NCBI GenBank assembly: GCA_973895155.1
Contig: OZ316898.1
Location: 5,257,079-5,321,078, forward strand
Direction of reading: 5' to 3'
Source: Marsupella aquatica
Taxonomy: Eukaryota; Plantae; Marchantiophyta
DNA: 64,000 nt
Part shown: positions 29,491 through 63,700 of the stretch, piece by piece
Layout: the number at the start of each line of letters is the position of its first letter
How positions within the stretch are numbered: position 1 is the first letter of the stretch
Notes under the pieces: model-generated
Told to the model about the DNA's origin: nothing
The model's database searches: none
What the model saw: the letters and a program-made list of their open reading frames with translations, nothing else
Program-made: the position numbers and the translations under genes

Positions 29491-29556
29491 TTTTGCATAA
29501 AAGACAACATACAGATAGGACACAGTCATTGCAATACCATTGCATATCATGTGAAA

Positions 29557-33442: not shown

Positions 33443-34530
33443 TAGATACGGTGCCGGAAACGTTTGGAAACCTCAAGGCTCTTAAAAGATTAGTGATAGC
33501 GGAGGCTAAGCGCCTGAAGTCCCTACCCGAAAGCTTTGGCAACTTATCTGCTCTCACATATTTGTCTCTCGTAGGTTGTGAGATTCTTGAAAGTCTGCCT
33601 GCGAGCTTTGGTCTGCTCTCGTCTTTGGAACAACTTGAGCTGCGTGAGCTGGAGCGGCTAGATACGGTGCCGGAAACGTTCGGAGATCTCAAGGCTCTTA
33701 GAAGACTAGAGATAGCGAAGGCTAAGCGCCTGAAGGCCCTACCCGAAAGCATTGGCAACTTATCTGCTCTCACATATTTGCGTCTCGAAGGTTGTGAGAT
33801 TCTTGAAAGTCTGCCTGCGAGCTTTGGTCTGCTCTCGTCTTTAAAACAACTTGAGCTGCGTGAGCTGGAGCGAAGGTTGTGAGATTCTTGAAAGTCTGCC
33901 TGCGAGCTTTGGTCTGCTCTCGTCTTTAAAACAACTTGAGCTGCGTGAGCTGGAGCGGCTAGAAACGGTGCAGGAAACGTTCGGAGATCTCAAGGCTCTT
34001 AGAAGATTAGAGATAGCGAAGGCTAAGCGCCTGAAGGCCCTACCCGAAAGCATTGGCAACTTATCTGCTCTCACATATTTGCGTCTCGAAGGTTGTGAGA
34101 TTCTTGAAAGTCTGCCTGCGAGCTTTGGTATGCTCTCGTCTTTAAAACAACTTGAGGTGCGTGAGCTGGTGCGGCTAGAAACGGTGCCGGAAACGTTTGG
34201 AGATCTCAAGGCCCTTAGAAGTTTAGAGATAACGAAGGCTAAACGCCTGAAGGCCCTACCCGACAGCTTTGGCAACTTATCTGCTCTCAAATATTTGCAT
34301 CTGGAAGGTTGTGAGATTCTTGAAAGTCTGCCTGCGAGCTTTGGTCTGCTCTCGTCTTTGGAAGAACTTAAGTTGCGTTGGGTGGAGCGGCTAGAGACGG
34401 TGCCGGAAACGTTCGGAGATCTCAAGGCTGTTAGAAGACTAGAGATAGCGAAGGCTAAACGCCTGAAGGCCCTACCCGAAAGCTTTGGCAACTTATCTGC
34501 TCTCGCATACTTGCAACTCCATGGTTGTGA
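33443..34530 (+). repeat. LRR-coding array of 72-bp modules (216-bp triads), copy 1
   Basis: Recurrent CTACCCGAAAGCTTTGGCAACTTATCTGCTCTC / CTTGAAAGTCTGCCTGCGAGCTTTGG / ACGGTGCCGGAAACGTT blocks. Confidence 0.95.
33786..33955 (+). repeat. Exact 85-bp tandem duplication causing a frameshift
   Basis: CGAAGGTTGT...GAGCTGGAG at 33786-33870 and 33871-33955. Confidence 0.92.
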
Positions 34531-36491
34531 CAGTCTTAAAAGATTGCCGACGAGTTTCAGGAATCTCTCTTCGTTAGTAGAATTAAAGCTCGATTCCTGT
34601 GACCAGCTGCTGCTGGAGAATTTGGGCCATCTCAAGGCTCTGGACACATTAGTACTCTGGTGCAAATACCTGGAGGTGCTACCCGACAGTTTGGGGACCC
34701 TCTCTTCACTGACAACGTTTGAGATCAGGGGGGAAAGGTTGCAGACCCTCCCGAGAACCATAGGACTGCTTCACTCACTGACGACACTGAAGATTGTGGG
34801 GAGCAGCCTAAGCAGTATACCCGAAGAACTCGGTAACCTGTCATCTCTAGAAATTCTGTTGCTTCAATCTTGTCACAGGATAGAGACCCTTCCGGACGGC
34901 TTAGGGCGCATTTCCTCGCTGAGACGAGTAATACTTAATGATTGCCCGAAATTGAAGAATGTACCAGATAGTTGGGGAGATGACTTAGCGCCTCGTGAAG
35001 ACAGAAGTATCGAGACAAGGAGAGCAGAACGGGGGCGGTTCTCCCACAACGCTTCTGCGTACGCGGAGAGGATTCGGCTATTTGTGGTTGGCTGTCCATT
35101 CCTCACTGCTCCGGAACTGCGAAGATTGGGCTGGATTAAGTGTAATCCCGGAAGATCCGACCATCTTCTATCTCAAAATGGTCTTAACTTTTACACTGTT
35201 GAGTATTGGGGAACGTGGTGGTACCGGATATAGCAGCTTCAAAAATTAGATTTGGGTATTGGGGAACGTGGTGGTACAGGATATATAGCATGTTCATCCT
35301 ATTACATGCCTAGACTGGAGTCTATAGACCAAGGGGCTTGAATTGAGGATGCAGACCAAAAACAGTAATGGGGGCAAAGATGAAGATGAAATAACATGTA
35401 ATTCTTGTTTCTGTAAGGTGTTTTTCTCCTCATCTCTTTGGAACGGGTAATCAGGATAGTCAGTATAAGGAACAGATTGAAACTGGTCATGTGTGTTGGC
35501 TTAAACTAGCATGAACAAAGGTAGCTAAACACCACCGTTCCAGTTTGCAGTGCCTGCTGTTAATAGTACTGTAGGTCATTCCATGATGGGTGTTATGGTC
35601 ATCAAGCAATTATAGTTACAAGCTCCTGGGCAGCTAACCAAGAAAGCCAAGCTCGAAGTTTCTTTAATTCTGAAAGGAATGCTTTTATATAGATTTCTCA
35701 TGGGAGCACCATTTTCTAGAAAGCTGCAGAATTAGTAATAATTTGTTTCTAGTTGGTCATAAAATGGCATCACTCTCCCCATAGCTCAATGAACATTACT
35801 ATTGTCATATAAAGGTTACACAAACTAGAAAGAGAGTCTCCTCAGTGGTTTCACGACAAGCAATGGCAGTGTTGAGTTTGAAGATTACAGGTTGCAACGC
35901 TCTCCGCACAGCTTGAAAACACTCTCTCGTGCATAGAGCATCACAGATTCTTTTTCATACCACACATCTTGTAAGGAAGATTCATTGGCAGGATCAACAT
36001 ACAGCAAGAATTTTACAAGACAGAATAATGCCTACAAATGTAGAATGGTGCCTCCTCTCTATTATGAAGGTATGAAGGTGACGGACTCCAACTGCTGTGG
36101 AGAGACCACCAGTCGCAGTGGTGACTATGAACGGAGGTTTGCAAAGTTTCCTCCAGCATTGTGATTAACTGCAGTACCAGCTGTGCAAGACCAACGGGTT
36201 GAAACAGATCTCTGTTTGAGTCTATTTCCTTCGGGAGTGCTCGCATAACATTCAGGCTGCTTATGTTTGGCTCGAAATTTCTCAAAAATTGCCGTTGGCC
36301 TTATGGAGGATGGGACTAGCTTTGTCGGGCGTCACTATGCTAAATCTCCCAGCCTGTATTCTACTCCAGCAAAGTCTCAGCCTTTCAGAAGTATCCACCC
36401 CCAAAACAACTCAAGCTCCGTTCTAGTACCCAAGTCCCACTTTCATAAGCTTTAGCCTCAGATCAAAATTCTGATGGTGAAAACATGCTCC

Positions 36492-37111
36492 TCATGGACA
36501 AATCTCAGTCTCGGAAACGAGGAGGAAAAGCACAGGCGAGTAGCTCAGGATTGGATACTGAAATGCATTCAGAAAATGAGCATACTATGCCAAAGTAGTT
36601 TCTCGATTTGGAACTTCATTAGATAGAAAATCGGACGGAGTAACTTTGCCGGTGTCAACTAGAGGAAACCACTTGTAACCAGGTCTTTCAGGTAGTGAAA
36701 CCGTCACAGGCAAATAAAGGGAATTGAAGGCAACATAATGTTCCTTACTGTGAGAGTCAACCTGCGTGTCTAGACAGGGATGTTAGCTCGAGAAACGATT
36801 TGAAATGAATTGCAGATAAACGAAACGATACCAGTATAGGTCAATAGGTTATTTGTTTTGAACCTGCCAATATGGACGACTGTGGCCTTCTCCTCATTTG
36901 CAAGATTACAAAGCATTCAGTAACACCATTTACAAAAATTTTACAGATCCTAAACGTCAAATGAGCGAAATGTCATGGGGAGAGCAATACTGGTGAAACA
37001 GCTACAAATCTACCCTAAATCTCCGACCAGTGAGGCATGTTTGGTGTCACGCCGTGCCACTCTAGCCGTTCCGCAGTCGGGAATTCTCCTAGCCTTAGTG
37101 CTTCACATTGA
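36492..37111 (-). pseudogene. ISA1: ISA1 3' fragment, copy 2 (indels)
   Basis: Colinear with 24298-24922, with small frameshifting indels. Confidence 0.85.
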
Positions 37112-40100
37112 CTGGAAAATCATTCCGCCAGTACAGTTTTTTGATTGTGGACGGGACAGTAGTAAGAAGAAGAAACAACTTGAAAACTAGACCAACCTTT
37201 TTGCATCTATCTGGTCAGCAGTTTTGTTTAAATTGCTTCTCATTATGAGAAGATCACGTTCAAATTATATTCTAATTCTAAGTGATTTGTGGCCAAAATT
37301 TGCTAGATTCCACGTCTCTAAACGTAATTTTCCCACAGGCTAAAATTACTAGATTTTCTATCTTTCAATAGTCACTTTTCCGCCTAGCCACAGACCCCAC
37401 TAGCCAAAATATGTCGTCATCTTTAAATGTAGTCAGAAATGTAACTGAATTACATAATGCATGTTCTTAGCGTGCTCTCCTTCACACAAGGGGTCATTGG
37501 CCACACTCACGAAAAAAAAAAGACATTAAAAATTAGGCCGGTCAGGCGGCTGTCATATATATTCAAGAAGAATTCAATCGAATTGAGTTGTCGTAATGAC
37601 CACTGATGTCCAGAGCATTGCTGATAATTTGTCCAATAGAACACAGCACGACACCAAACTTGACAAAGTGATCGAATGACGTCGTTAATGGCTGCCAGAA
37701 GCTCAAGAATGGATAGACCGATCGCTTTGACGTCGAATTACAATTCCTACTGAAGAAGTGAGGACCTTCAAAATTTCTGAGCAGTATGCACAGAAGCAAG
37801 AAGATCGGAAGTTTTTGTGAGCACGCACATTATAGCCAAATGGATATTAGGACCGTAGGCGAAGTGTAGATGTGTAGCATTTTATGGTGACGGTAGCGAG
37901 CTGGGTGTTTTTTAAACCAATCGAGCAGTCCACCTCCAAGACATTTTCGTATGAGATACGAGTCGCAACGTGTTGGCAAAACGTTCTTTCACAGTGTTTT
38001 CAGTGTGGGGCCCTGACTTTTCTAAAGTGTGGGCCATTTCAGGGTGGCGTGACGAGTTACGAACGACCTGGGAGGTGCACAAAGCTCCGTTCGACCACGC
38101 GGAAGATGCCCAGAAGATTCTGGCTTGCTTGGTACTTATTATACAATGGAAAAAAACATTTCGAAGTACACTTTAGATGGTTCTCATCCAGCACTTCTTC
38201 GGACGGAGCTCTGTGCACACTACTGTGTTGAATTTCAGTCTGTGCCCTCTGGTTATATGACTGTAGATAGTTCTAATCCAGCACTTCGTCGGACGGAGCC
38301 ACTACAGTGTGTGATTTTAGTCTGTGCCCTTTGTTTGAATGAACCGAGCTGTGTTTTGTGCATTGGTGTGAAGTAGAGGAGTTCATGAATAGGGCGGGCG
38401 TCGTTGGTAGCCAGGGCTAATGTTTTACTTGCTCCACATTCCGACTCAAGTTCCTCGTCCCCGAGGAAGGAGAGCAGAGCAGAGCAGAAGAGAGCAGCTT
38501 GTTTTCTTTTGGGAACTTCTACAATGTTTCAGTCGTGCTTGGCAATCGGGGAGGAGGGATTTTGGCAGACGTGTTTTGCTTCAGTTGATTTCGTCATACA
38601 CGTACACGAACGGTGTGAAGCCTTCGGGACTGGGTGTCCAAGTTGCAAAGCATTTCGGTCGATTCTTCCTTTGAAGAGCTGGACTTGAGCCTGGTCTTCG
38701 GTCACTCTGGAACAGTTGGTGCTGCGGAAACTCGTTCTTGGAAAGGTCTTCCACTTTACCGGCTTCCTCGTGCACATCGTCGTGCATGCTATGTGAGTTT
38801 CGGGATTAAGGTTGACCCGCGCTTCAATGTTTACACATCTGCTGCCGATCTCACTTGGTGACTGACATGATATCTTGAATGGTCGATTTCCTTAAGCCAG
38901 GTAGGGTTAACTTGTTCCCCATATCCGCGCTCTTTTCTCTTGGTTGAGCAAGGTGAGCAGGAGAGGAGGAGAGGGAAGTCTAGCAACCATTGGTTAGATG
39001 AACGTTGCTCGAATGTATTTCAATTCCCCCTTGCTCCCGGGGTGGGAGGGATCTTTTGATCGATGAGCTCTTAATTCTCCATTCCATTAGTCACTAATTT
39101 CTGAATTGCTGTTTAAACCTGCTTCCTGTTTGTTTTACTTTTGGGGACTCTTACGGCCTGTAGAGCATGTCGATAAATCTTTCAGGGCTCCCTCACGGTT
39201 GATGATGTAGGCCCAGTGACAGTCTACAGGGATTGGTTGGAATTGAAGTGCACAATGCTACTGGGATTCCTTCTGTGAACCTCTTCTTTGTGTGACTCTT
39301 GAGAACAAAACCTTGTGCGTTGAAGAATGTCCGAAGCACTGGTTTGTTTGACTGCCGTGCCATTTTTGTTGCTGACCATTCCGTGGATTGTTAAAAAGTG
39401 GCAGGTTTTATTAGTCGGCTAGGTCCATTTCGGTCTTCCTGGGAGAGACCGACATCCCGGAGCTTCCTGCAAGGTTTTGGAGTGTTCCTGCCGTTGTGAC
39501 TCACTTGGACCTAAGAGATACTTCACGATCTTCTGAAATTTCGAGCAATGTCTACCGTACATGTCGGTTCTGGCTCCTCTTCAGACGCTCCATTCGCATC
39601 TGGGTCTCGAAGTCCTCGTCAGGTAGTCCTCAGTCCAGACCACGAGATTGACAATTGTGTGATACCGCCCGCTGTTGGCGTGGTAGACCACCTGCAGTAA
39701 CGTTTCCGGCAATGAGCAACCTTGGCCGCAAGATTTGTATAAAATCACAATTATTTTCATGACTTGTTGACAGTAATTTTGCTGTTGGGATACAGATTAT
39801 TTTGGTGGATATATAACTGCACGTACTGATGTTGCTCTTTGCTTTTCTTAGGTGAATGAATCTGTCTACAAATTCGACAGGCCGCAAGACACTCCTACTT
39901 TGCAAATTCTGTTTTTTCATGGACTCCAATTTGATGATTCTTTGGAAACGCATTTCCGTAATTGGGAAAGTGGAGACAGGTCTGTCATCTGGCCTGAAAA
40001 GTGGTTGGTTGAAGATTTTCCCACTGCCGAGATCCTGTATATTTCCTATGATGGATTGGTAAAAAAGGGATCCCACTTGAATGAAAGTCTGGGGATGTAC

Positions 40101-43100
40101 ATTATTGCCGAAAATTTGATGTCTGACCTAATTCAAGCGGGTGTTGGTCAAATTTGGAACTGTCCGGTCATAATGGTTGGGCATTGCTTTGGTGGTATGG
40201 TCATCAAAGAGCTATGTTTGCACGCTCATAAAGCGCGGAGCGATCCCACCAAACGCAAAATCTTTCTTGACAATGTGAGAGGAATATTTAATTACAGTAC
40301 TCCTCATCATGGGAGTGACATTTTCGAGAGAGTTGGAGATATGAAACACCCTTTGTGGTCATACTTTCGAGTTTTGAGCACAGAAGGAGCACGACTTAAT
40401 CACGAGTTCGATCATTTGTCCAAATTACATGGATGGAAAATCCGTGGTATTGGAGCCGGTCTCCGTGTTCCATCGGTACACATACTTTCATCCCCAGCTT
40501 TGTCTACGCTCACTGGCTATTTTTCTGTAGACTGAGTAAAATTGTGTGAACGTCAACTCAATGAAGACCATCTTGAAACTGTGCTGACATAGTGTAAATT
40601 CCGTAGGTGGGCGGCAACGTGAGTCGAAATGCTTATATCCTCTTTAGTCTAATGTGGGTTAGACATCTTGTACAATAGAGTTGTGTGTAGTCATCGACCT
40701 TTGTCAAAGATAAGCAGAATTACCTGTTCCATTTATTTGCTTTCGCATCTAGATTGTTACTATCTTGGCAAACTTTTTGTCAAGGATTTGATTTTGCAAG
40801 AAGCCATGTAACTTAGGGATATAATGGAGCGTACTCCTGGGTGTGCAGGGCCGCTTCAAAGGGCTGCTTCTAGTCAAGGAGTCATCTGCAAGAGGAGGGG
40901 AGTCTTTCACTGTGAGGGAAGCGGACCATTTTGCGATTTGCAAACCAGAAAGTAAGACTTCAAGTGGCTACTATGAGCTCAAGGAACTCCTTCGCAGCAT
41001 TGAGAGTAGCATTCCAAAGGTAATTTAGTTGTTCCTACTTTGACGTCACATGATCAGCCTGCTTTGGTTGGATCAGGTTCAATCGTTTTTATAACTGTTT
41101 GTGCATACTGTTATCAAAGCTTTACAGGCAGTGTAGCAAGCTCTGTCTAAACACGGCTATGTATCCATCGATTGCTGCGAGAGCACTTATTGCGGATGGA
41201 TCGTACTTGCGTTGTATTTCCTACGTGAAGATTCACAGTGTCTAGTGTCCAATAAACCCTCGTTGCCTGAGTTTATATGTGGAAACCTCCTAGTTTTGCA
41301 TAAAAGACAGCATACAGTTAGGACACAGTCATTGCGATGCCATTACATATCATGTGAAATAGGTACGACCATCAGCAATGACTTATGTCGCGAACGGTAA
41401 GACAACGAGTACTGGACGTCGTAAGCATTCCCAGATAGAACTCAGTCCGGTCGATTTGATTGATAGAGGAGATAGGACCCTAGGATCATCCCTAGCGGTC
41501 GCAGACAGGAACCAAGCGACAAGAAACCTGTGTCACTCAATGCACTCGGCGTCATTCCATCGACTGTGATGTATGCCTGATCAGCTTCAGTATAAAGTCT
41601 GCATACACTGTCAATCGCTGGACAATACTGGGAAACGACAGCATCGATCTAAATTGACAAATAAGATTGGGAGATGACTGAGCGGAGATAGTGCTAGAGT
41701 AGTTGAGCATGCCAGCGACTAGATTACAACCATGGAAACGCGGCAAAGCTATTACTATCCTGATAAATATCTCACAAATGTGGTCATTTTGGGAGCACTT
41801 CCCTGCTGGTGCTGGGATCGATGTGATCATTCAGACCCTTCTCTTCTTTAATTTAGCGACTGTGGAGATTAAATAAGTATCCTCACTTCAATTTTCCATT
41901 GTCTGATGTTGATATATCGGTTTCATCTTTGCAGGCAACGAGGCTTATTCATGGACTCCCGACTTATCCTACCGATTTGGAAAGGCGTTGGCACGAGGTT
42001 CAAGTAAAGCTAGCACAAGCGCCAGTAGTAGGCATCGTTGGCATGGGCGGAATCGGGAAAACAACTATTGCTAAGGAACTATTCAACAACATCTCTGGAA
42101 ATTTTGAATATGCTTGTTTTACTGAAACTGTCACGAGCATCCAGAAGCACGAGCTAGAGAAGCTGATACTCGGAAATTTTGATCGCCGTGGGACTAGGGT
42201 CGAGAGAAATCAGATTAGGTGGTCTGACCTGGAGAAGACAAAGACACTGATCGTCTTGGATGGTGTGGATCATAAACAAATCATACCTTTGCCCGATTTG
42301 GATTTCTTTGGGGAAGGTAGCCGTTTGATCATTACAAGTCGTGATCAAGGCGTTATGGATGTTTTTGCAAACCGTGTCATTTACGACGTTGAGTTTCTCA
42401 TCGACGACGTGGCAAAGAAGCTCTTCTGCCGGCATACATTTGGGGAAGACGGAATTCCAGACCATCGGTCACAGGAAAATCATCACTTGAATGAGAATGT
42501 GGATGGAGTGGTAAAGAAATGCGGCGGGCTACCATTGACGTTGGAAGTAACGGGGTGCTATCTCAGACGTCACATGACTAACGCTAGTGTGTGGAAGCAG
42601 ACAATAGAGAAGCTAGGAAAGGCGCAATCTGTTAATGGGCTTCGGGATGACAGAGTGTGGTCTTCCTTGAAAGTGAGCTATGATGGCCTTGAGGGTGACC
42701 TACAAGGCATGTTCATCGAAGCCGGGACGTATTTCTTTGGGCAACGTGTACAGCAAGCCCTCGCAGCTTGGAGCACTGCTTATGGAAATTCAGATGCAGC
42801 CTGGGCTAACTTGCTCAGTACATCCATGGTGAAGGAAGTAGACAGGAGGAAACTGTGGAATTGGCCCGATGGCAAGATTGAGCCATGGGACGACGGCAAG
42901 GAGATATGGGTGCACGAGCACCTGCGTGATCTGGCCAATAATCTCTCGATGGGGGCGTCAGTATCGATGTCCGTGGGAGGGGGTTGCGCAGAAGTGGATC
43001 TTCTCAATGTTGTAAGTACAAACCAGAGACTTTGTGACAAAATACAGCCGGTTTTATGAATGAGCAATTGAAAGCAATGAATGTCAACATTGTGGAGAGT

Positions 43101-44784
43101 ACACTCAGCTGCATTATATTTCATCTCGACAATTGTTTCTTTAACGAGATTCAAGCTAACCTTTTACGCTTCGGTAGTTTAGAACAGAAATTCAGTGGTT
43201 TTATCCATGCTTCTGGCGCAGAATCCAGTTGCATGACAATTTATACTCTCTTCTCCTCCGTTTTCACTCTCAATAGTTGTACTTGTCAGAAAACGCTTAT
43301 CTGTGATTCACATGTCATCAGGTTAAATCCGAGACAAAACACTTGCGGATACGAGGCGTTCGGGATGGGATGAAACCAACGAAGATTCAGTTAGAAATGC
43401 TGGATAAACTGGAAGAATTGAAATATTTGGAGCTGGATCGTGTTGTGCCTGAAGGGCTGAGCACGAACTTCCCAAAGAAGCTTTCCTTACTGAGATGGAA
43501 ATACCATTTTGAACGGGGTTCCACGGCGATGCCGATCAGTCTGAAGGGAATGAAGAATTTGGCTGTCCTAGAACTCTCACGGTGCACAATGCCGGAGGAA
43601 TCTATTGAGGCATTGGGAACGTTAACGAACCTGCGGACTTTATCGCTTCAGCATATAAGAGGACTTTACTGTCTCCCAGACAATTTGGATCATCTGTCCC
43701 AGTTGAATCGGTTGGAATTATCGGGATTGGAAACAATGGAAACATTGCCGCATTCGATTGGTCACCTCCGGGCCCTGGAACATTTGGTGTTAGACTGTAG
43801 CAACTTTAAGCATTTGCCGGATTCTTTTGGCAATCTGTCTTCTCTGGCAACATTACAGATGAATGACTGTAACCGGCTTAGAAGTCTGCCCGAATCCTTT
43901 GGGCGACTCACGTCTTTGACAAGCTTCGAAATCAAAAAGTGCGAAATGCTAGATACGGTGCCGGAAACGTTCGGAGATCTCAAGGCTCTAAAAAGATTAT
44001 GGATAACGAAGGCTAAGCGCCTGAAGTCCCTACCCGAAAGCTTTGGCAACTTATCTGCTCTCACAGATTTGCATCTCAAAGAATGTGAGATTCTTGAAAG
44101 TCTGCCTGCGAGCTTTGGTATGCTCTCGTCTTTGGAAATACTTGAGTTGAATTGGGTGGAGCGGCTAGATACGGTGCCAGAAACGTTGGGAGATCTCGAG
44201 GCTCTCAAAAGATTAGTGATAGAGGGGGCTAGGCGCCTGAAGTCCCTACCCAAAAGCTTTGGCAACTTATCTGCTCTCACATATTTGATGGTCTACGGTT
44301 GTGAGAATCTTGAAAGTCTGCCTGCGAGCTTTGGCAACTTATCTGCTCTCACATATTTGCATCTCGTAGGTTGTATGATTCTTGAAAGTCTGCGTGCGAG
44401 CTTTGGCAACTTATCTGCTCTCACAGAGTTGCATCTCGATCGTTGTAAGATTCTTGAAAGTCTGCCTGCGAGCTTTGGTATGCTCTCGTCTTTGAAAGAA
44501 CTTCAGTTGTGTCAGCTGGAGCGGCTAGAAACGGTGCCGGAAACGTTCGGAGATCTCAAGGCTCTTGGAATCTTAATGATAGTGGACGCTAGCCGCATGA
44601 AGGCCCTACCCGAAAGCTTTGGCAACTTATCTGCTCTCATAGATTTGCGTCTCGAACGTTGTGAGAGTCTTGAAAGTCTGCCTGCGAGCTTTGGCATGCT
44701 CTCGTCTTTGGAAGAACTTGTTTTGGGTGCGGTGGAGCGGCTAGATACGGTGCCGGAAACGTTTGGAGACCTCAAGGCACTTAA

Positions 44785-45046
44785 TGTTGATAAAACTATC
44801 TAGCATGACTAAGATACCGGAACAGCCAACGGGAAGCACATAAGTACTCGGGGAAAGGGCAAGGAGTGCAGGGGGCGACAAAGAGGCGCCGCATAGTAGA
44901 AGAGCCCAAGAGAAGGGGCGAAAGCATCAGATGGATGCAACCTAGATCTAAAGGTAAGCAGCAAGGGACAGAAGACGACAACGAACAGAAAGTGGGCCCG
45001 TATACTGAAGGGGAAAACAAGGTACTGAAGATCGTAGTTTCCAACA
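44785..45046 (-). repeat. Copia 3' LTR
   Basis: One mismatch (45000 G vs A) to the other LTR by eye. Confidence 0.97.
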
Positions 45047-45160
45047 CCCCCTCTCGATCTGAAGCCGCAGAAAACAAACGGGAGAGAGAGAGATGATGCA
45101 GGTCAGCGAGAGTACCACTGTAGGTATAGTGCGGGAGTGCAGTGTACACATATGATGAAC

Positions 45161-48100
45161 CTAGATGAGAAGAGAGGACCTAGACCGAATGCCAAGGAAA
45201 TCTCGATGCTTTTCAAAAATTTGCCGACAGACTTGTTTGGTGAAAATGTCAGCATGTTGGTCATCGGTGTTGATGTATTGTAAAGAGACTTCGCCTTCAA
45301 GAATCCTTTCACGTACAAAGTGGTGTTTGGCCTCAATGTGTTTGGTGCGAGCATGGAAGATCGGATTCAGAGCAAGTCGAATAGATCCTTGGTTATCGCA
45401 GTGTAAGTGTAGATCGTGAGAAGTAGGGATTGCAGCTTCGTGTAGGTCCTTGTGGATGGTGGCATTGTCGCATTGAACAGGAACGGTGACGTTGGAGGTA
45501 TGTTGGAGCTCGCGAAGTAATCGACGTAGGTACACAGCTTCCTTAGTAGCCTCAGAGAGGGCCTTGTACTCAGCTTCGGTGGTGCTGTCCGAAATTGTGG
45601 GTTGTCGTTTGCTAGCCCAGGAGATAGGCCCAGAAGCCAGGGTGAAGACATAGCCAGCAGTAGAGCGCCGAGTATCGAGGCATCCAAGGTAGTCCGCATC
45701 AGTATATCCTGTGAGAAGAAGCTGAGAGGAGCGTTTGTAGTGGATCCCATAGTCAAGTGTCTTCTTAACGTACCGAAGGATGTGCTTGGCAGCTTCCAAG
45801 TGCTGCAAGTGAGGTTGAGACATAAAACGAGCCACCATACCAACTGAGTAGGATAGATCCGGTCGAGTGGTCGTAAGGAAGAGTAGTTTACCCACAAGGG
45901 TGCAATACTCTGAGCGGTCAACGGGAGCCGTGTTAGAGTTAGATTGAGTGGCGAATCCTTCTGGTAGAGGCGTGTGGGCAGGCCTGCATTCAGTCATATT
46001 GTAATCACGAAGAATCTGTTCGGCATAGGTGTGCTGGTGAAGAAGCATACCGTTTGCAGTCTTGGTGAACTCCACACCGAGATATTTGCGGATTTCACCA
46101 AGATCCTTCATTTCGTACCGATTCTGAAGATTGAGCTTGATAGTGTCGATGAGTGCCAAATCATTGCCGGTAATAAGAAGGTCGTCCACGTAAAGGAGTA
46201 AGAGTACAATAGAGGACCCCTGAAATAAGTAATACAGGTTGGGGTCAGCATCGCTCCGAGTCCAACCTTGTTCGTGAAGGTACTTATCAATCTCTTGATA
46301 CCATTCACGGGGGGATTGCTTCAGTCCATAGATGGATTTGTTGAGCCGGCAAACAAGGTGCTCCAATCCTTTACGAGCAAAGCCAGGCGGTTGTTGCATG
46401 AAAAGGAGCTCTTTAAGAGTCCCGTTAAGGAATGCAGTAACAACGTCCATATGACTGATAGGCCAACCAGATGCAACAGCAAGAGCGATAACAGCACGAA
46501 GAGTTGACCAGCGAACGACGGGTGCAAAAGTGTCATTATAATCTATGCCAGGTTGCTGTTCAAGACCCCTAGCAACAAGACGAGCTTTAAGACGTGCGCG
46601 CGTTGGATTATCGGCGTCATGGATAGGTTTAGATTTGTACAGCCATTTTGATGAAATTGCACGTCTCCCCGGGGGTAACTCCACAAGGTCCCATGTCTCA
46701 TTTTTAATCAAGCTGTCATATTCTTCATGCATAGCACTGCACCAGCCAGGGTCTTGTATAGCATCACGGAAGGCAATAGTGTCACTAACAGGGTTAGCGG
46801 TTTCGATAATGCATAAGTCTACATCCTCCGGGATATGCATTTCATAGTCCCCACTACGAGCCCAGGCTGGAAGCTGCCTGGCCCTTGACCCGCGGCGTTT
46901 TGGTAGCGGATTAATCTGAACATTTGGAGCAAGGGTGGAGTTACAGGGCAGAGGAGGAGCCTCGTCGATGGTGGGGTCGACGTTGTGGACATGAGTCCCA
47001 CCGTGATTGCCAAGGTCAGCAACGTCCTTGATGGTGTTGTCATTGGGGAGCTGGGTCCCATCAAGATTGCTAGGGGCATCGTGAGCAGCATGGTCAAGAA
47101 CATGATGTTCGTCCCCTTCTGGCTCAGAAGGAGCCTCAGTTGCCGGGAGAAGGTCAAGAAAAATGTCTGACTGGGCAGGAGGAGCACGAAAATCTCCAGG
47201 GGAGTCTTCAATAAAGGTGACATTGGAGGAGATAAGGATCCGACGAGAGAGGGGGTCAAAACAGCGGTAGCCTTTGGTGTTGAGGTCATAACCAATGAAG
47301 ACAGAAGGGATAGCTCGCGAGCCAAATTTCCCATCGGACTTAGTAGGGAGGCGAACAAAAGCTGAGCAGCCAAGGACACGGAGGTGAGAGAGATCAGGCT
47401 TCATACCATAGAGAGCCTCAAAGGGCGTCGAGAGATGAAGGGCCCGAGTGGAACATCGATTGAGAACATAGGTGGCAGCTTTGACTGCCTCAGGCCAGAG
47501 GAAGCGAGGATATTTACCCTCAACATATATACTCCTGGCGGCCTCAAGTAAAGTGCGATTTTTGCGTTCAGCTACCCCATTTTGGTGGGGGGTACTAGGG
47601 GCAGTCAGTTGACGGCGAATCCCGTGGTGGCTGCAGAACTCAATAAATTCTTGGGACAAGTATTCGCCACCTCGATCAGAGCGTAAACAGGAGAGCTTGG
47701 TGCCAAATTGATTTTCGGCAGCAGTTTTGAACGTCTTGAAGCAGCGGAAAGTCTCATGTTTGTGAGAGAGATAATAGACCCACGTAAAACGGGTAAAATC
47801 GTCGATGAAGGTCAAGATGTACTTGACGGGGGAGCTGGAGTGGATGGGTCCGCAAAGATCAGAATGCACCAGATCCAAAACACGTGATGTGCGTCGAATG
47901 GAGTGCTTGGGGACATTGTCACGATGAGTTTTGCCGAGGATACATGACGTACATTGCTTTTTCTGAAAGGAGAGCAAGGGAACACCAGTAACGAGGTGTC
48001 GGGCAGTCATGTGATGTGCAGTTTGAAAGTTGAGATGAGCCAGACGCCGGTGCCATAAGTCGACAATGTCAGTCTCCACATTGGTGATGGTATTCGCTTC

Positions 48101-49483: not shown

Positions 49484-49613
49484 GGCTAGATCACGTTGGG
49501 AACTCTCACCAACTGAAATAGACGGAGGGACAGGTCGCTCAAACTCAGAGAACTCTCATCTAAGTGTAGCGTTGGATCTTAGTCATGGGAGAGCTAACCT
49601 TGCTCTGATACCA

Positions 49614-49875
49614 TGTTGATAAAACTATCTAGCATGACTAAGATACCGGAACAGCCAACGGGAAGCACATAAGTACTCGGGGAAAGGGCAAGGAGTGCAG
49701 GGGGCGACAAAGAGGCGCCGCATAGTAGAAGAGCCCAAGAGAAGGGGCGAAAGCATCAGATGGATGCAACCTAGATCTAAAGGTAAGCAGCAAGGGACAG
49801 AAGACGACAACGAACAGAAAGTGGGCCCATATACTGAAGGGGAAAACAAGGTACTGAAGATCGTAGTTTCCAACA
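49614..49875 (-). repeat. Copia 5' LTR
   Basis: Adjacent to the PBS on the minus strand. Confidence 0.97.
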
Positions 49876-52121
49876 CTTAAAACATTAGTGATAACGGAGG
49901 CTAAGCGCCTGAAGGCCCTACCCGAAAGCTTTGGCAACTTATCTGCTCTCACGTATTTGCGTCTCGCAGGTTGTGAGATTCTTGAAAGTCTGCCTGCGAG
50001 CTTTGGTATGCTCTCGTCTTTGGAAGAACTTGAGCTGCGTGAGCTGGAGCGGCTAGATACGGTGCCGGAAACGTTTGGAGACCTCAAGGCACTTAAAAGA
50101 TTAGTGATAGCGGAGTCTAAGCGCCTGAAGGCCCTACCCGAAAGCTTTGGCAACTTATCTGCTCTCACACATTTTTCTCTCGAAGATTGTGAGATTCTTG
50201 AAAGTCTGCCTGCGAGCTTTGGTATGCTCTCGTCTTTGGAAGAACTTGAGCTGCGTGAGCTGGAGCGGCTAGATACGGTGCCGGAAACGTTTGGAGACCT
50301 CAAGGCACTTAAAAGATTAGTGATAATGGAGGCTAAGCACCTGAAGGCCCTACCCGAAAGCTTTGGCAACTTATCGGCTCTCACATATTTGCGTCTCGAA
50401 TGTTGTGAGAGTGTTGAAAGTCTGCCTGCGAGCTTTGGCAACTTATCTGCTCTCACAGATTTGCATCTCGAAGGTTGTGAGATTCTTGAAAGTCTGCCTG
50501 CGAGCTTTGGCATGCTCTCTTCTTTGGAAGAACTTGAGTTGCGTAAGCTGGAGCAGCTAGATACGGTGCCGAAAACGTTTGGAGACCTCAAGGCACTTAA
50601 AAGATTAGTGATAACGGAGGCTAAGCACCTGAAGGCCCTACCCGAAAGCTTTGGCAACTTATCGGCTCTCACATATTTGCGTCTCGAATGTTGTGAGAGT
50701 GTTGAAAGTCTGCCTGCGAGCTTTGGTATGCTCTCGTCTTTGGAAGTACTTCACCTCCGTGAGCTGGAGCGGCTAGATACGGTGCCGGAAACGTTCGGAC
50801 ATCTCATGCCTGTTATTAGATTGGATATAAGGGAGGCTAAGCGCCTGAAGGCCCTACCCGAAAGCTTTGGCTACTTACCTGCTCTCACATTTTTGTGTCT
50901 CGAAGGTCATGAGATTCGTGCAAGTCTGCCTGCCAGATTTGGTTTGCTCTCGGCTGTGCAAAAACATATATTGTGTCAGCTGGAGCTAGATACGGTGCCG
51001 AACTTGTTCGGAGATCTCAAGGCTCGTAGGTTAATGAGAGTGGAGGCTCACTTCTGAACGGGCAAGGCAGTTGGCACTCAAGGCTCTCTTTTGAACGGGT
51101 AATCAGGCTAGTCAGTCATGTGTGTTGGCTTAAACTAGCATGAACAAAGGTAGCTAAACACCACAGTTCCAGTGTTGTGCAGTGCCTGCTTTAATAGTAC
51201 TGTAGGTCACTCCATGGTGGGTATTATGGTCATCAAGAGAATTATAGTTACACGCTCCTAGGCAGCTAACCAAGAGAGCCCAGCTCAAAGTTTCTTCAAT
51301 TTTGAAACGAATGCGTTTATATAGCGTTCGTCATGGGAGCACCATTTTTTAGAAAGCTGCAGAATTAGTAATAATTTGTTTCTATTTGGTCATAAACTGG
51401 CATCTCTCTCCCCATCGCGCAATGAACATTACTATTGTCATATAAAGGTTACACAAACTCGAAAGAGAAAGTGTCCTCAGTGGTTTCAGGACAAGCAATG
51501 GCAGTGTTGAATTTGAAGATTACAGGTTGCAACGCTCTCCACACAGCTTGAAAACACTCTCTCGTGCATAAAGCATCACAGATTCTTTTTCATACCACAC
51601 ATAAGGAAGATTCATTGGCAGGGTGAACATACAGCAAGAATTTTACAAGACAGAATAATGCCTACAAATGTAGAATGGTGCCTCCTCTCTATTATGAAGG
51701 TATGAAGGTGACGGACTCCGACTGCTGTGGAGAGACCACCAGTCGCAGTGGGGACTATAAATGGAGGTCTGCAAAGTTTCCTCCAGCATTGTGATTAACT
51801 GCAGTACCAGCTGTGCGAGACCAACGGGTTGAAACATATCTCTGTTTGAGTCTCTTTCCTTTGCGAGTGCTGGAATAGCATTCAGGCTGCTTATGTTTGG
51901 CTCGAAATTTCTCAAAAATTGCCGTTGGCCTTATGGAGGATGGGACTAGCTTTATCGGGCGTCACTCTGCTAAATCTCCCAGCCTGTTTTCTACTCCAGC
52001 AAAGTCTCAGCCTTTCAGAAGTATCCACCCCAAAAGAACTCAAAGCTCCGTTCTAGTACCCAAGTCCCACTTTCATAAGCTTTAGCCTCAGTTAAAAATT
52101 CTGATGGTGGAAACATGCTCC

Positions 52122-53653: not shown

Positions 53654-53724
53654 TTGCTTCAATTGGACGTTGTACGTTGCTTCAATTGGACGTTGCTTCA
53701 ATTGGACGTTGCTTCAATTGGACG
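53654..53724 (+). repeat. 16-bp tandem repeat TTGCTTCAATTGGACG x4
   Basis: Direct reading. Confidence 0.9.
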
Positions 53725-53770
53725 TACATGCATCTCCACAAGAAGACATAGAAAAGTAGAATGTCTGTGG

Positions 53771-57280: not shown

Positions 57281-57315
57281 CACTAGTAGAAAACGGGATC
57301 ATTTTAGACCCTATT
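57281..57315 (+). mobile_element. 35-bp orphan CACTA 5' terminus
   Basis: CACTAGTAGAAAACGGG... is inserted into GGCCTGT|AGAGCAT, which is uninterrupted in units 1 and 2. Confidence 0.7.
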
Positions 57316-57711
57316 AGAGCATATCAATCCAATCTTTCAGGGCTCCGTCACGGTTGATGATCTAGGATCAGTGACAGTCTACAAGGAGTGACTGGAATTG
57401 ACGAGCATAATGCTACTAGGATTACTTCTGTGAATTTCTTCGCTGTCGGACTCTTCAGAACAAAGCCTTGCGCGTTGAAGAATGTCCGAAGCACTGGTTT
57501 GTTTGACCTGCCGTGCCTTTTTTGTTGCTGTTTTGCTGACCATTCCGTGAATTGTTGAAAAGTGGCAGGTTCTAATAGTCGGCTAGGTCCATTTCCCTCT
57601 TCCTGAGAGAGACCGACATCCCGGAGCTTCCTGCAAGGTTTTGTAGTGTTTCTGCCATTGTGACTCACTTGGACCTAAGAGATACTTCACGATCTTCTGA
57701 AATCTCGAGCA

Positions 57712-60700
57712 ATGTCGACCTTACATGTCGGTTCTGGCTCCTCTTCAGACGCTCCATTCGCATCTGGGTCTCGAAGTCCTCGTCAGGTAGTCCCCAGTCC
57801 AGACCACGAGATTGACAATTGTTGATATCGCCCGCTGTTGGCGTGGTAGACCACCTACAGTAACGTTTCCGGCAATAAGCAACCTTGGCCGCAAGATTTG
57901 TGTAAAATCACTATTATTTTCATGACTTGTTGACAGTAATTTTGCTGTTGGGATACAGATTATTTTGGTGGATATATAACTGCACGTACTGATGTGCTCT
58001 TTGCTTTTCTTAGGTGAATGAATCTGTCTACAAATTCGACAGGCCGCAATACAATCCTACTTCGCAAATTCTGTTTTTTCATGGACTCCAATTTGATGAT
58101 TCTTTGGAAACGCATTTCCGTAATTGGGAAAGTAGAGACAGGTCTGTCATCTGGCCTGAAAAGTGGTTGGTTGAAGATTTTCCCACTGCCGAGATCCTGT
58201 ATATTTCCTATGATGGATTGGTAAAAAAGGGATCCCACGTGAATGAAAGTCTGGGGATGTACATTACTGCCGAAAATTTGATGTCTGACCTAATTCAGGC
58301 GGGTGTTGGTCAAATTTGGAACTGTCCGGTCATAATGGTTGGCCATTGCTTTGGTGGTATGGTCATCAAAGAGCTATGTTTGCAAGCTGATAAAGCGCGG
58401 AGCCATTCCACCAAACGCAAAAACTTTCTTGACAATGTGAAAGGACTATTTAATTACAGTACTCCTCATCATGGGAGTGACATTTTCGAGAGAGTTGGAG
58501 ATATGAAACACCCTTTGTGGTCATACTTTCGAGTTTTGAGCACAGAAGGAGCACGACTTAATCACGAGTTCGATCATTTGTGCAAATTACATGGATGGAA
58601 AATCCACGGTATTGGAGCTGGTCTCCGTGTGCCATCGGTACACATACTGTTATCCCCAGCTTTGTCTACGCTCACTGGCTATTTTTCTGTAGACTGAGTA
58701 AAATTGTGTGAACGTCAACTCAATAAAGACCATCTTGAAACTGTGCTGACATAGTGTGTATTCCGTAGGTGGGCGGCAACGTGAGTCAGAGTTTTTGGAA
58801 ATGCTTATATCCTCTTTAGTCTAATGTGGGTTAGACATCTAATCTTGTACAATAGAGTTGTGTGTAGTCATCGACCTTTTTCAAAGATAAGCAGAATTAC
58901 CTGTTCCATTTATTTGCTTTCTCATCTAGATTGTTACTATCTTGGCAAACTTTTTGTCAAGGATTTGATTTTGCAAGAAGCCTGTAGCTTAGGGATATAA
59001 TGGAGCGTACTCCTGGGTGTGCAGGGCCGCTTCAAAGGGCTGCTTGTAGTTCAGGAGTCATCTGCAAGAGGAGGGGAGTCTTTCACTGTGAGGGCAGCGG
59101 ACCATTTTGCGATTTGCAAACCAGAAAGTAAGACTTCAAGTGGCTACTATGAGCTCAAGGAACTCCTTCGCAGCATTGACAGTAGCATTCGAAAGGTAAT
59201 TTGTTTGTTCCTACTTTGAGGTCACTTGATCAGCCTGCTTTGGTTGGATCGTGTTCAATCGTTATTATAACTGTTTGTGGATACTGCTACCAAAGCTGTA
59301 CAGGCGGTGCAGCAAGCTCTGTCTAAACACAGCTACGTATCCATCGATTCCTGCGAGAGCACTTATTGCGGATGGATCGTACTTGCGTTGTATTTCCTAC
59401 GTGAAGATTCCCAGTGTCTAGTGTCCAATAAACCCTCGTTGCCTGAGTTTATCTGTGGAAACCTTCTAGTTTTGCATAAAAGACAGCATACAGTTAGGAC
59501 ACAGTCATTGCGATACCATTGCATATCATGTGAAATAGGTACGACCATCAGCAATGACTTATGTCTCGAACGGTAAGCCAACGAGTAGTGGACGTAGTAA
59601 GCATTCCCAGATAGAACTCTGTACGGTCGATTTAATTGATAGAGGAGATAGGACCCTAGGATCATCCCTAGCGGTCGCAGACAGGAACCAAGCGACAAGA
59701 AACCTGTGTCACTCAATGCACTCGGCGTCATTCCATCGACTGTGATGTATGCCTGATCAGCTTCAGTATAAAGTCTGCATACACTGTCAATCGCTGGAAA
59801 ATACTGGGAAACGACAGCATCGATCTAAATTGACAAATAAAATTGGGAGATGAGTGAGCGGAGATAGTGCTAGAGTAGTTGAGCATGCCAGCGACTAGAT
59901 TACAACCATGGAAACGCGGCAAAGCTATTACTATCCTGATAAATATCTCACAAATGTGGTCATTTTGGGAGCAGTTCGCTGCTGGGGCTGGGATCGATGT
60001 GATCATTCAGACCCTTCTCTTCTTTAATTTAGCGACTGTGGAGATTAAATAAGCATCATCACTTCAATTTCCCATTGTCTGATGTTGATATATCGGTTTC
60101 ATCTTTGCAGGCAACGAGGCTTATTCATGGACTCCCGACTTATCCTACCGATTTGGAAAGGCGTTGGCACGAGGTTCAAGTAAAGCTAGCACAAGCGCCA
60201 GTAGTAGGCATCGTTGGCATGGGCGGAATCGGGAAAACAACTATTGCTAAGGAACTATACAACAACATCTCTAGAAATTTTGAATATGCTTGTTTTACTG
60301 AAACTGTCACAGGCATCCAGAAGCACGAGCTAGAGAAGCGGATACTCGGAAATTTTGATTGCCGTGGGACTAGGTTCGAGAGAAATCAGATTAAGTGGTC
60401 TGACCTGGAGAAGACAAAGACACTGATCGTCTTGGATGGTGTGGATCATAAACAAATCATACCTTTGCCCGATTTGGATTTCTTTGGGGAAGGTAGCCGT
60501 TTGATCATTACAAGTCGTGATCAAGGCGTTTTGGATGTTTTTGCAAACCGGGTCATTTACGACGTTGAGTTTCTCATCGACGACGAGGCAAAGAAGCTCT
60601 TCTGCCGGCATACATTTGGGGAAGACGGAATTCCAGACCATCTCTTACAGAAAAATTATGACTTGAATGAAAATGTGGATGGAGTGGTAAAGAAATGCGG

Positions 60701-63700
60701 CGGGCTACCATTGACGTTGGAAGTAACGGGGTGCTATCTCAGAAATCACATGACTAACGCTAAGGTGTGGAAGGAGACACTAGAGAAGCTTGGAAAGGCG
60801 CAATCTGTTAATGGGCTTCGGGATGACAGAGTGTGGTCTTCCTTGAAAGTGAGCTATGATGGCCTTGATACTGACCTACAAGGCATGTTCATCGAAGCCG
60901 GGACGTATTTCTTTGGGCGAAGTGTACAGCAGGCCCTCGCAGCTTGGAGCACTGCTTATGGAAATTCAAATACAGGCTGGGCTAACTTGCTCAGTACATC
61001 CATGGTGAAGGAAATAGACAGGAGTAAAGTGTGGAATTGGTCCCATCGCCAGAGCCTGCTATGGGACGACGCCAAGGAGATATGGGTGCACGAGCACCTG
61101 CGTGATCTGGCCAATAATCTCTCGAAGGGGGCTACAGTATCGATGGATGTGGAAGAGGATGACACAGCAGTGGATCTTCTCAATGTTGTAAGTACAAACC
61201 AGAGACTTTGTGTGACAAAATAGAGCCGGTTTTATTAATGAGCAATTGAAAGCAATGAATGTCAACATTTTGGAGAGTACACTCAGCTGCATTATATTTT
61301 CATCTCGACTATGATTTCTTTAACGAGATTCAAGAACCTTTTGCGCTTTGGTAGTTTAGAACGGAAATTCAGTGGTTTTATCCATGCTTACTTATGGCGC
61401 AGAATCCAGTTACATGACAATTGATACTCCTCCGTTTGCACTCACTAGTTGTATTTTTCGGAAAACGCTTATTTGTGATTAACGGGTCATCAGGTGAAAT
61501 CCGAGACAAAACACTTGCGGATAGTAGGCCGTCCTCATGCGATGGAACCAACGAAGGTTCGATTAGAAATGCTGGATAAGCTGGAAGAATTGAAATATTT
61601 GGAGCTGCATTTTGTTCCGCTTGAAGGGCTGAGCACGAACTTTCCAAAGAAGCTTTCCTTACTGATATGGGAATATTATTCTGAAAGGAATTCCCCGGCG
61701 ATGCCGATCAGTCTGAAGGGAATGAAGAATTTGGCTGTCCTAGAACTCTCATGGTGCACAATGACGGAGGAATCTATTGACGCATTGGGAACGTTAACCA
61801 ACCTGTGGACTTTATCGCTTCAGCATATAAAAGGACTTTACCGTCTCCCAGAGAATTTGGATCATCTGTCCCAGTTGAATCGTTTGGAATTGTCGGGACT
61901 GGAAACAATGGAAACATTGCCCCATTCTATTGGTCACCTCCGGGCCCTCGAACATTTGGTGTTAGACTGTAGCAACTTTAACCATTTGCCGGATTCTTTT
62001 GGCAATCTGTCTTCTCTGGCAACATTACAGATGAATGACTGTAACCAGCTTAGAAGTCTGCCCGATTCCTTTGGGCGCCTCACGTCTTTGACGAGCTTCG
62101 TAATCGGAAGGTGCGAAATGCTAGATACGGTGCCGAAAACGTTCGGAGATCTCAAGGCTCTTACAAAATTAGTGATAACGAGGGCCAAACGCCTGAAGGC
62201 CCTACCCGAAAGCTTTGGCAACTTATCTGCTCTCACATATTTGCGTCTCGAAGGTTGTGAGATTCTTGGAAGTCTGCCTGCGAGCTTTGGCAACTTATCT
62301 GCTCTCACATATTTGCGTCTCGAAGGTTGTGAGATTCTTGGAAGTCTGCCTGCGAGCTTTGGTATGCTCTCGTCTTTGGAAGAACTTGGCTTGGTTTGGG
62401 TGAACCGGCTAGATACGGTGCCGGAAACGTTCGGAGATCTCAAGGCTCTTAGAATTTTAGAGATAACGGACGCTAAACGCCTGAACTCCCTACCCGAAAG
62501 CTTTGGCAACTTATCTGCTCTCACATATTTGCGTCTCGTTTGTTGTGAGATTCTTGAAAGTCTGCCTGCGAGCTTTGGTATGCTCTCGTCTTTGGAATCA
62601 CTTGAGTTGCATTGGGTGGAGCGGCTAGATACGGTGCCAGAAACGTTAGGAGATCTCAAGGCTCTTAAAAGATTAGTGATACAGGGGGCTAAGCGCCTGA
62701 AGTCCCTACCCGAAAGCTTTGGCAACTTATCTGCTCTCACACATTTTTCTCTCGAAGATTGTGAGATTCTTGAAAGTCTGCCTGCGAGCTTTGGTATGCT
62801 CTCGTCTTTGGAAGAACTTGAGCTGCGTGAGCTGGAGCGGCTAGATACGGTGCCAGAAACGTTGGGAGATCTCAAGGCTCTTAAAAGATTAGTGATAGAG
62901 GAGGCTAAGCGCCTGAAGTCCCTACCCGAAAGCTTTGGCAACTTATCTGCTCTCACATATTTGCGTGTCGACGGTTGTGAGAATCTTGATACGGTGCCGG
63001 AAACGTTCGGAGATCTCAAGGCTCTTAAAAATTTAGAGATAACGAAGGCTAAACGCCTGAAGTCCCTACCCGAAAGCTTTGGCAACTTATCTGCTCTCAC
63101 ATATTTGTGGCTCGAAGGTTGTAAGATTCTTGAAAGTCTGCCTGCGAGCTTTGGTCTGCTCTCGTCTTTGGAAGAACTTAAGTTGCATTGGGTGGAGCGG
63201 CTAGATACGGTGCCGGAATCGCTTGGAGATCTCAAGGCCCTTATAAGTTTAGAGATAACGGAGGCTAAGTGCCTGAAGGCCTTACCCGAAAGCTTTGGCA
63301 ACTTATCTGCTCTCACATACTTGCGTCTCCAAGGTTGTGACAGTCTTAAAATATTGCCGACGAGTTTCGGGAATCTCTCTTCGTTAGTAAGACTAGAACT
63401 CGATTCCTGGGACCAGGTGCTGCTGGAGAATTGGGGTCATCTCAAGGCTCTGAAAACATTCGTACTCTGGTGCGAATATCAGGAGGTGCTACCCGACAGT
63501 TTGGGGACCCTCTCTTCACTGACAACGTTTGAGATCAAGGGGGGAAGGTTGCGGACCCTCCCGAGAACCATAGGACAGCTTCACTCACTGACGACACTGA
63601 AGATTGTGGGGAGCAGCCTAAGCAGTATACCCGACGAACTCCGTAACCTGTCATCTCTAGAAATTCTGTTGCTTAAATCTTGTAACAGGATAGAGACCCT

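Follow-up and report, generated by a model that had tools for sequence, protein, structure and literature searches.

In-frame LRR module arrays with a diversified face in a hydrolase-NLR gene cluster of the liverwort Marsupella aquatica

Three paralogues with modular LRR exons

A 64-kb stretch of Marsupella aquatica contig OZ316898.1 (the whole stretch analyzed is called the window here, and positions are counted from its first nucleotide) contains three tandem, same-strand paralogues of a single gene encoding an alpha/beta-hydrolase domain, an NB-ARC domain, and leucine-rich repeats (LRRs); the central part of each LRR exon is an in-frame string of 24-codon modules in which a conserved scaffold carries a highly variable seven-residue face. 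We designate the paralogues g1, g2, and g3, and delimit them by open reading frames (ORFs) and by tblastn with a Calypogeia hydrolase-type nucleotide-binding LRR receptor (Hyd-NLR, P0001):

27616..35233, plus strand: g1 (ORFs; tblastn with Calypogeia Hyd-NLR P0001)
27616-28239 and 28619-28777, plus strand: g1 hydrolase exons (ORFs, tblastn)
31453-32580, plus strand: g1 NB-ARC ORF
32725-35233, plus strand: g1 LRR exon, including the conserved C-terminal tail
39852..51057, plus strand: g2, with hydrolase, NB-ARC, and an LRR exon that a Copia element interrupts
41899-43059, plus strand: g2 NB-ARC
58014..64000, plus strand: g3, with hydrolase exons, NB-ARC, and an LRR exon running to the window end
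60075-61223, plus strand: g3 NB-ARC
61479 to the window end, plus strand: g3 LRR exon, 840 codons without a stop

Two hydrolase exons in each copy match residues 31-305 of Calypogeia fissa P0001 at 39-41% identity (tblastn, E 1e-40 to 1e-42); a Pfam search of the hydrolase exon gave no match at E<=0.01, and the domain is assigned because of its homology to Hyd-NLR relatives. The NB-ARC domain was identified as PF00931 (E 1.8e-26, scoring 93 bits where the cutoff is 23.5), and the LRR exon matched PF23598, PF25019, PF13855, and PF23286, all over cutoff and with E values down to 1e-51; exons were searched one at a time, without a joined spliced protein. Breaks between ORFs or between high-scoring segment pairs fall inside the hydrolase domain, at the hydrolase/NB-ARC boundary, and at the NB-ARC/LRR boundary. 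Compared with known proteins, the g3 LRR exon has its best matches in Calypogeia, Marchantia, and Riccia, at only 41-44% identity; TIR-NLRs of moss and seed plants rank next.

By their hydrolase, NB-ARC, and LRR content the genes appear to belong to the liverwort-type Hyd-NLR (HNL) class, a known bryophyte class of NLRs (Xue et al. 2012, PMC3352924; Chia et al. 2024, PMC11218826) that is marked, according to the former paper, by phase-0 introns of its own, some inside the hydrolase domain and others separating the domains. The likeness to this class lies in the domain order (hydrolase, NB-ARC, LRR) and in the closest proteins, which are NLRs of Calypogeia, Marchantia, and Riccia; the difference lies in the nucleophile elbow, which reads GHCFGG in all three hydrolase domains (27616-28293, 39852-40535, and 58014-58697) but GHSFGG or GHSYGG in the Calypogeia and Marchantia relatives, so that Cys stands in place of the catalytic Ser in g1, g2, and g3. 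Hydrolase domains from Marchantia are reported to cause cell death in Nicotiana benthamiana (PMC11218826). Upstream of the arrays, g2 and g3 align over 4.4 kb at 94.4% identity, their gaps reaching at most 10 nucleotides (nt), and divergence outside the repeats is 5.6% between g2 and g3 and 7-9% between g1 and the others. A diverged hydrolase-exon remnant, 80% identical to the g3 5′ region, lies alone at 22957-23437, upstream of the three full copies.

In-frame tiling of the LRR exons yields 57 modules of 72 nt (24 codons): 19 of type A, 16 of type B, 18 of type C, and 4 B/A hybrids, arranged on a C-A-B super-repeat of 216 nt. The preliminary description of this DNA had already read these exons as strings of A, B, and C modules, and Tandem Repeats Finder (TRF) reports arrays of period 72, 216, 288, or 301 where that description had placed them (33441-34542, 44255-44478, 49874-51021, and 62124-63347). 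Matches to the CAB consensus occur in the whole 64 kb only at 33442-34582, 43949-44784, 49876-51048, and 62121-63385; the same scan of the window found no stray module cassettes outside these four in-frame exon segments. The arrays and the features within them are:

33442..34534, plus strand: g1 array, 15 module starts
33786..33957, plus strand: perfect 85-nt tandem duplication (72+13) in g1 (TRF, 2.0 copies at 100%; an 87-nt exact repeat at offset 85)
43949..44784, plus strand: g2 array, 5′ part, CABCA[BA][BA]BCAB and then the opening 14 codons of a C module
44309..44452, plus strand: two consecutive B/A hybrids of g2; the third g2 hybrid is at 50413-50484
44785..49875, minus strand: Ty1/Copia retrotransposon with long terminal repeats (LTRs), inside a C module of g2
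49881..51057, plus strand: g2 array, 3′ part, with the remainder of the split C, ABCABCA[BA]BCABCA, and then degenerate modules
62121..63344, plus strand: g3 array, 17 modules
62211..62362, plus strand: perfect 72-nt tandem duplication in g3 (TRF, 2.1 copies at 100%)
62265, plus strand: g3 B/A hybrid module, the product of that duplication
62913..63056, plus strand: B skipped in g3, an A module joined directly to a C module (…GCEN-LDTVP…) at the joint 62913/62985

As that description had proposed, both the number and the order of modules vary between copies: g1 has 14 modules (CABCAB-BCABCABCA), g2 has 27 (CABCA[BA][BA]BCAB(C)ABCABCA[BA]BCABCA), and g3 has 17 (CA[BA]BCABCABCACABCA). The faces vary widely, with 43 distinct seven-residue sequences among the 53 pure modules, and every face quoted as an example beforehand was found. 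Among 11 contiguous CAB units the mean amino acid identity is 79.5% (69-93%), and it separates into 90% for the scaffold alone and 38.5% for the face. The four hybrids are B in their first third and A in the remainder, and 4/4 switch within the shared AGCTTTGG (module nt 19-26), which agrees with the proposal that hybrids join in shared sequence; the skipped B module, expected near 62980 from the residues CENLDTVP, lies at the joint listed above.

Repetitive minus-strand ORFs of 306-460 amino acids, of the form ‘RADKLPKLSGRAFRRLA…’, run through the arrays at 33841-34761, 49638-50672, and 61934-63316. They are most likely a by-product of a repeated stop-free antisense frame and not genes.

Relationships among modules and selection on the face

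Modules group by type and not by gene, as the preliminary description had predicted of a module tree. Within a type, nucleotide divergence is 0.056-0.094 in the scaffold and 0.28-0.32 in the face, compared with about 0.51 between types; distances between modules of the same gene equal those between modules of different genes; the nearest neighbor is of the module's own type in 57/57 cases; and same-gene nearest neighbors number 19 observed against 13.2 expected (P=0.086), that is, there is no clustering by gene. Aligned at the level of modules, the arrays are collinear only toward both ends, and the alignment of g2 with g3 requires at least 6 module-scale insertions or deletions, in contrast to the small gaps (up to 10 nt) in the 4.4 kb of the two genes upstream.

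Several of these changes have left nearly unaltered traces. Specifically, i) the g3 hybrid arose from the perfect 72-nt duplication, and is therefore independent of the g2 hybrids, so that the AGCTTTGG junction, an 8-nt homology common to all four hybrids, has been used more than once; ii) g2 contains exact repeats of 139 nt at offset 216 and of 111 nt at offset 288; iii) g1 contains a 301-nt duplication with 97% identity; and iv) g1 also contains the perfect 85-nt duplication, which is out of register, has about 2 nt of junction homology, and breaks the ORF at 33882/33851; being destructive, it looks like the work of undirected slippage or repair, not of a process under control. Modules have repeatedly been gained, lost, and hybridized, in some cases very recently. 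Over 151 nt, g2 (50132-50282) and g3 (62704-62854) are identical; this tract was considered as a candidate for gene conversion between paralogues and rejected, because the nonrepetitive flanks, at 5.6% divergence, themselves have identical runs of 187, 164, and 136 nt.

For the analysis of selection, the face was defined beforehand by the x residues of LxxLxLxx (module codons 15, 16, 18, 20, and 21), with the other 19 codons as scaffold. Per-codon nonsynonymous diversity peaks at these positions in all three module types; in type C the five most variable codons of the 24 coincide with them exactly. The interleaved core codons of the face window, L17 and L19, remain conserved. Pooled Nei-Gojobori proportions of nonsynonymous (pN) and synonymous (pS) differences are 0.341 and 0.114 for the face (pN/pS 3.0) as against 0.059 and 0.099 for the scaffold, and g3, the intact copy, gives the same pN/pS result on its own. 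When changes were counted by parsimony on per-type neighbor-joining trees, which removes the nonindependence of pairs, the face had 88 nonsynonymous and 9 synonymous changes (omega 2.3, binomial P=0.0057) and the scaffold 52 and 26 (omega 0.69; face versus scaffold, Fisher P=1e-4); scaffold omega was 0.6-0.7 across methods. A face dN/dS of 1 or less, which the preliminary description had named as a refuting result, was thus not what we found.

Synonymous sites qualify the picture in two ways. First, the earlier view that the scaffold is almost invariant even at synonymous sites is overstated, for its pS (0.099) is about that of the face (0.114). Because a scaffold pS of about 0.10 matches both the face pS and the divergence of the paralogues (5.6-9%), modules of the same type appear either about as old as the gene duplications or maintained at that level by exchange. 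Second, targeted hypermutation of the face was considered and rejected: its synonymous diversity equals that of the scaffold, and such unraised levels at face synonymous sites give no hint of mutation directed there.

The variable positions were also located in a structure model. An AlphaFold2 model of the product of g3 61905-63488 (mean predicted local distance difference test score 87, predicted template modeling score 0.84) is a regular 24-residue solenoid in which each module has a five-residue strand at positions 16-20 and a short helix at 6-10, and Foldseek retrieved LRR horseshoes, with SHOC2 as the best structural match. In LRR proteins, alternate strand residues and their neighbors form the concave, usually ligand-binding surface. 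According to the model, the hypervariable positions sit where expected for that surface, and the face may accordingly be the part of the receptor that binds ligand.

The contrast between face and scaffold could also arise without positive selection, if conversion homogenized the well-matched scaffold, while the face, excluded from conversion, drifted under relaxed constraint. A related array speaks for this reading. The Marchantia polymorpha Hyd-NLR P0009 (DNA L001, AP031354.1; 5814-6986) has 17 consecutive 69-nt modules in which 16 scaffold codons have pS 0 and pN 0.02, and 7 face codons have pN 0.36 and a pS of 0.27-0.31, about as large. The neutral account can also point to the fairly high scaffold omega (0.6-0.7) of the Marsupella arrays, and to the fact that 2/3 copies are pseudogenes, as described below, so that part of the variation is post-functional. 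In the Marsupella arrays, however, face pN is about 3 times face pS, face pS is not above scaffold pS (0.114 versus 0.099), g3 alone agrees, the tree-based nonsynonymous excess is significant (P=0.0057), and L17 and L19 are conserved in the midst of the variable positions. We therefore regard a neutral mosaic as unlikely, and diversifying selection on the concave face, acting together with unequal exchange or slippage, as well supported.

Integrity of the copies and of the assembly

Only g3 is without a visible lesion; g1 and g2 are broken. The reading frame of g1 is shifted because of the 85-nt duplication, which is either a very young pseudogenizing event or an error of assembly or polishing. 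The LRR exon of g2 is interrupted by the minus-strand Ty1/Copia element, whose 261-nt LTRs are 100% identical, with TGTTG…CAACA ends and a perfect 5-nt target duplication (CTTAA), and whose gag-pol ORF of 1440 amino acids (45161-49483) is intact; this insertion is, from its sequence, evidently very recent, and the family is possibly still active. Apart from the Copia element and one target-site copy, the g2 array is in frame over 27 modules; its last modules decay until a stop ends the frame at 51057. In the stretch 50773-51114, g2 has no counterpart of g1 34535-35485, which holds the conserved C-terminal LRRs and tail present in g1 and g3, and its homology to the region downstream of g1 restarts at 51115 (95% identity to 35486-37679). 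One intact copy beside two broken ones is the state typical of birth-and-death evolution in a resistance (R) gene cluster.

In so repetitive a region, part of the differences in module number and order, and the 85-nt duplication itself, might be artifacts of assembly. Public reads over 60000-64000 from four runs assemble only into contigs of 135-370 nt, with many differences derived from paralogues and none spanning more than 2 modules; the breakup is family-wide, and the exact duplication of 85 nt in tandem could plausibly have come from polishing or assembly. Against this, g3 is open over 840 codons, and g2 stays in frame across its 27 modules once the Copia element and the target-site copy are set aside; the faces are mostly unique (43/53) and would anchor an assembler, and at the two ends of the arrays the modules match in order from one paralogue to another; and the independent reference genomes of Marchantia and Calypogeia have arrays of like kind. 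We give assembly error little credence as an explanation of these differences.

Farther upstream, at 4745-8477 and 10440-13661, the window contains transposon-like ORFs with a sub-cutoff match to the transposase-associated domain PF13963 (20.7 versus 27.7 bits) and a match to DUF4218 (PF13960). These are followed by an ORF of 1073 amino acids with a GC content of 0.55, a strong A-over-T skew, no Pfam match, and a charged, coiled-coil-like composition.

Comparison with other receptors and interpretation

Repeat arrays of this kind have close parallels in fungi. Fungal NLRs such as Podospora nwd, het-e, and het-d have highly internally conserved (HIC) WD40, ANK, or TPR repeats which are shuffled and in which surface positions are positively selected (Dyrka et al. 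2014, PMC4986451). As in Marsupella, the C-terminal sensor consists of near-identical tandem repeats whose number changes within and between paralogues, with selection at a few surface positions; the fungal proteins lack LRRs, whereas here the repeat is an LRR, there are three interleaved module types, and no process resembling repeat-induced point mutation is seen. To count as HIC, repeats must share at least 85% of their amino acids along a stretch of 100 residues or more (Dyrka 2014, PMC4986451). The Marsupella CAB units fall below that identity, at 79.5% for the whole unit versus 85%; they do show the variation of repeat number and shuffling between family members, and the positive selection at few face positions, that go with it.

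There are further parallels in plants and an alga. Homologues of melon Vat/Pm-w carry differing numbers of R65aa, a conserved LRR unit of 65 residues, a difference attributed to unequal crossover (PMC10807702), and LRR copy-number variation is known for tomato Cf-2/Cf-5 (Dixon 1998, as cited in PMC10515242). These genes resemble the Marsupella cluster in having conserved tandem LRR units that differ in number among clustered homologues, with unequal crossover inferred and unit number tied to specificity in those systems; the Marsupella genes are in contrast liverwort Hyd-NLRs in which each unit is one LRR of 24 residues, the units follow a phase of three types, and there are up to 27 modules. 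In the LRR-ROCO family and the NB-ARC-TPR family of Ectocarpus, 72-nt LRR exons undergo shuffling both within and between loci, sites under positive selection lie on the concave side, and the authors openly speculate that recombination might be somatic (Zambounis et al. 2012, PMC3341825). LRR cassettes are reshuffled and concave faces diversified in both cases, but each Ectocarpus LRR is an exon of its own, subject to exon shuffling, while the Marsupella modules are contiguous in one exon and are changed by tandem duplication, deletion, and hybrid formation. In lampreys, the gene for a variable lymphocyte receptor (VLR) is incomplete in the germline and is completed somatically with donor cassettes that flank it. 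The VLRs likewise carry their diversity in concave-face residues on a conserved LRR scaffold; their anatomy of incomplete gene and donor cassettes is not that of the Marsupella locus, where modules occur in the 64 kb only within the four in-frame exon segments.

Within the plants, comparable arrays occur in other NLRs. Besides the Marchantia array, Calypogeia P0001 has a two-module super-repeat of 48 residues, and further matches in which 20-residue windows recur in extended series with at least 80% identity include NLRs from elm (Ulmus; 24 copies of 24 amino acids), grapevine (Vitis; a TIR-NLR with 8 copies of 71 amino acids), the moss Ceratodon (a TIR-NLR, 12 copies of 47), Macadamia (a TIR-NLR, 11 copies of 47), and pine (Pinus; a TIR-NLR, 17 copies of 24). 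In these elm, grapevine, moss, Macadamia, and pine repeats (P0018, P0075, P0012, P0042, and P0023), variation is concentrated around xxLxLxx. The match list favors repetitive proteins owing to the repeat-rich query, and thus shows occurrence and not frequency; with that proviso, the module architecture seems widespread, and special neither to the g1-g3 locus nor to Hyd-NLRs. The searched parts of PMC3352924 and PMC11218826 contain no passage on LRR module structure, and the literature searched yielded no account of concerted evolution among the LRR modules of liverwort NLRs, an absence which is no proof.

We conclude that the locus is in all probability a tandem Hyd-NLR cluster whose module arrays have been shaped by in-frame recombination and by diversifying selection on the concave face, presumably in the service of immune recognition. 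Same-type modules are about 90-95% identical in DNA sequence, which would permit out-of-register pairing to add, remove, or hybridize whole modules in frame, whether by unequal exchange between sister chromatids or homologues, by replication slippage, or by short conversion; such pairing would also keep modules similar across an array and among paralogues, as in concerted and birth-and-death evolution. Residues that build the solenoid are conserved, while the five exposed residues of xxLxLxx gain replacements some 3 times faster than synonymous changes, and the result is paralogues with 14, 27, and 17 modules and at least 43 different faces. Copies are lost as well, g1 by a frameshifting duplication and g2 by a retrotransposon and a 3′ deletion. 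All of these would be germline processes on an evolutionary timescale, of a kind long described for plant R genes.

Several points weigh against this conclusion and should be kept in view: i) the excess in the face depends on few synonymous changes (about 9), and omega above 1 is just moderately significant (P=0.0057); ii) a homogenized scaffold would lower dS and inflate any ratio built on scaffold dS; iii) with face pS as high as face pN, positive selection is not shown in the Marchantia gene; iv) exchange between paralogues is not demonstrated, the 151-nt tract being shorter than runs in the flanks (187 and 164 nt); v) the module order derives from one assembly; and vi) none of the six public sequencing runs is RNA.

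We wish to distinguish the evolution of these arrays from a dedicated mechanism for rapid diversification, that is, a programmed or somatic (mitotic) shuffling of LRR cassettes within individuals or clonal lines, along the lines of VLRs or of the suggestion made for Ectocarpus. Liverworts are haploid-dominant and clonal, and mitotic events in them would be heritable. The perfect 72-nt and 85-nt duplications are very recent, and a comparable idea has been published for the 72-nt LRR exons of Ectocarpus (PMC3341825). Yet the arrays are complete and in frame in ordinary exons, with neither an incomplete germline gene nor flanking donor cassettes; the recent 85-nt event is out of frame and destroys its gene, as undirected slippage would; public data, in short contigs only (135-370 nt), contain no variant module orders or joints; face synonymous sites are not hypermutated; and the architecture is widespread in ordinary plant NLRs. 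A dedicated system is on this evidence highly improbable. The preliminary description had proposed recombination-based receptor diversification, of which module recombination with selection on the face stands (by clustering, hybrids, and omega) and a special system, with ordinary exons and 2/3 copies broken, does not; its further suggestion of unusually fast or somatic action finds no support in ordinary in-frame exons, an unraised face pS, and so widespread a pattern.

A more modest version can be imagined, in which mitotic unequal sister-chromatid exchange in the arrays is frequent enough to produce heritable receptor variants among the gemma lineages of haploid clonal liverworts, with module number and order then varying in populations on ecological timescales. 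We think this doubtful; if true, plants would have a quasi-adaptive, LRR-based repertoire generator like that of the fungal HIC repeats.

Taken alone, the locus leaves knowledge of R-gene evolution unchanged: it adds a clear new case to a way of evolving that is known, and apparently widespread, among LRR receptors, and is not a new or somatic system. What it shows unusually clearly is how rigidity and evolvability can be combined in one LRR sensor, with a three-module scaffold reshaped in frame while the face diversifies. Marchantia polymorpha, a tractable model, has an equal design, and a systematic survey could link the fungal HIC repeat concept with plant NLR evolution and nominate natural LRR scaffolds for receptor engineering.

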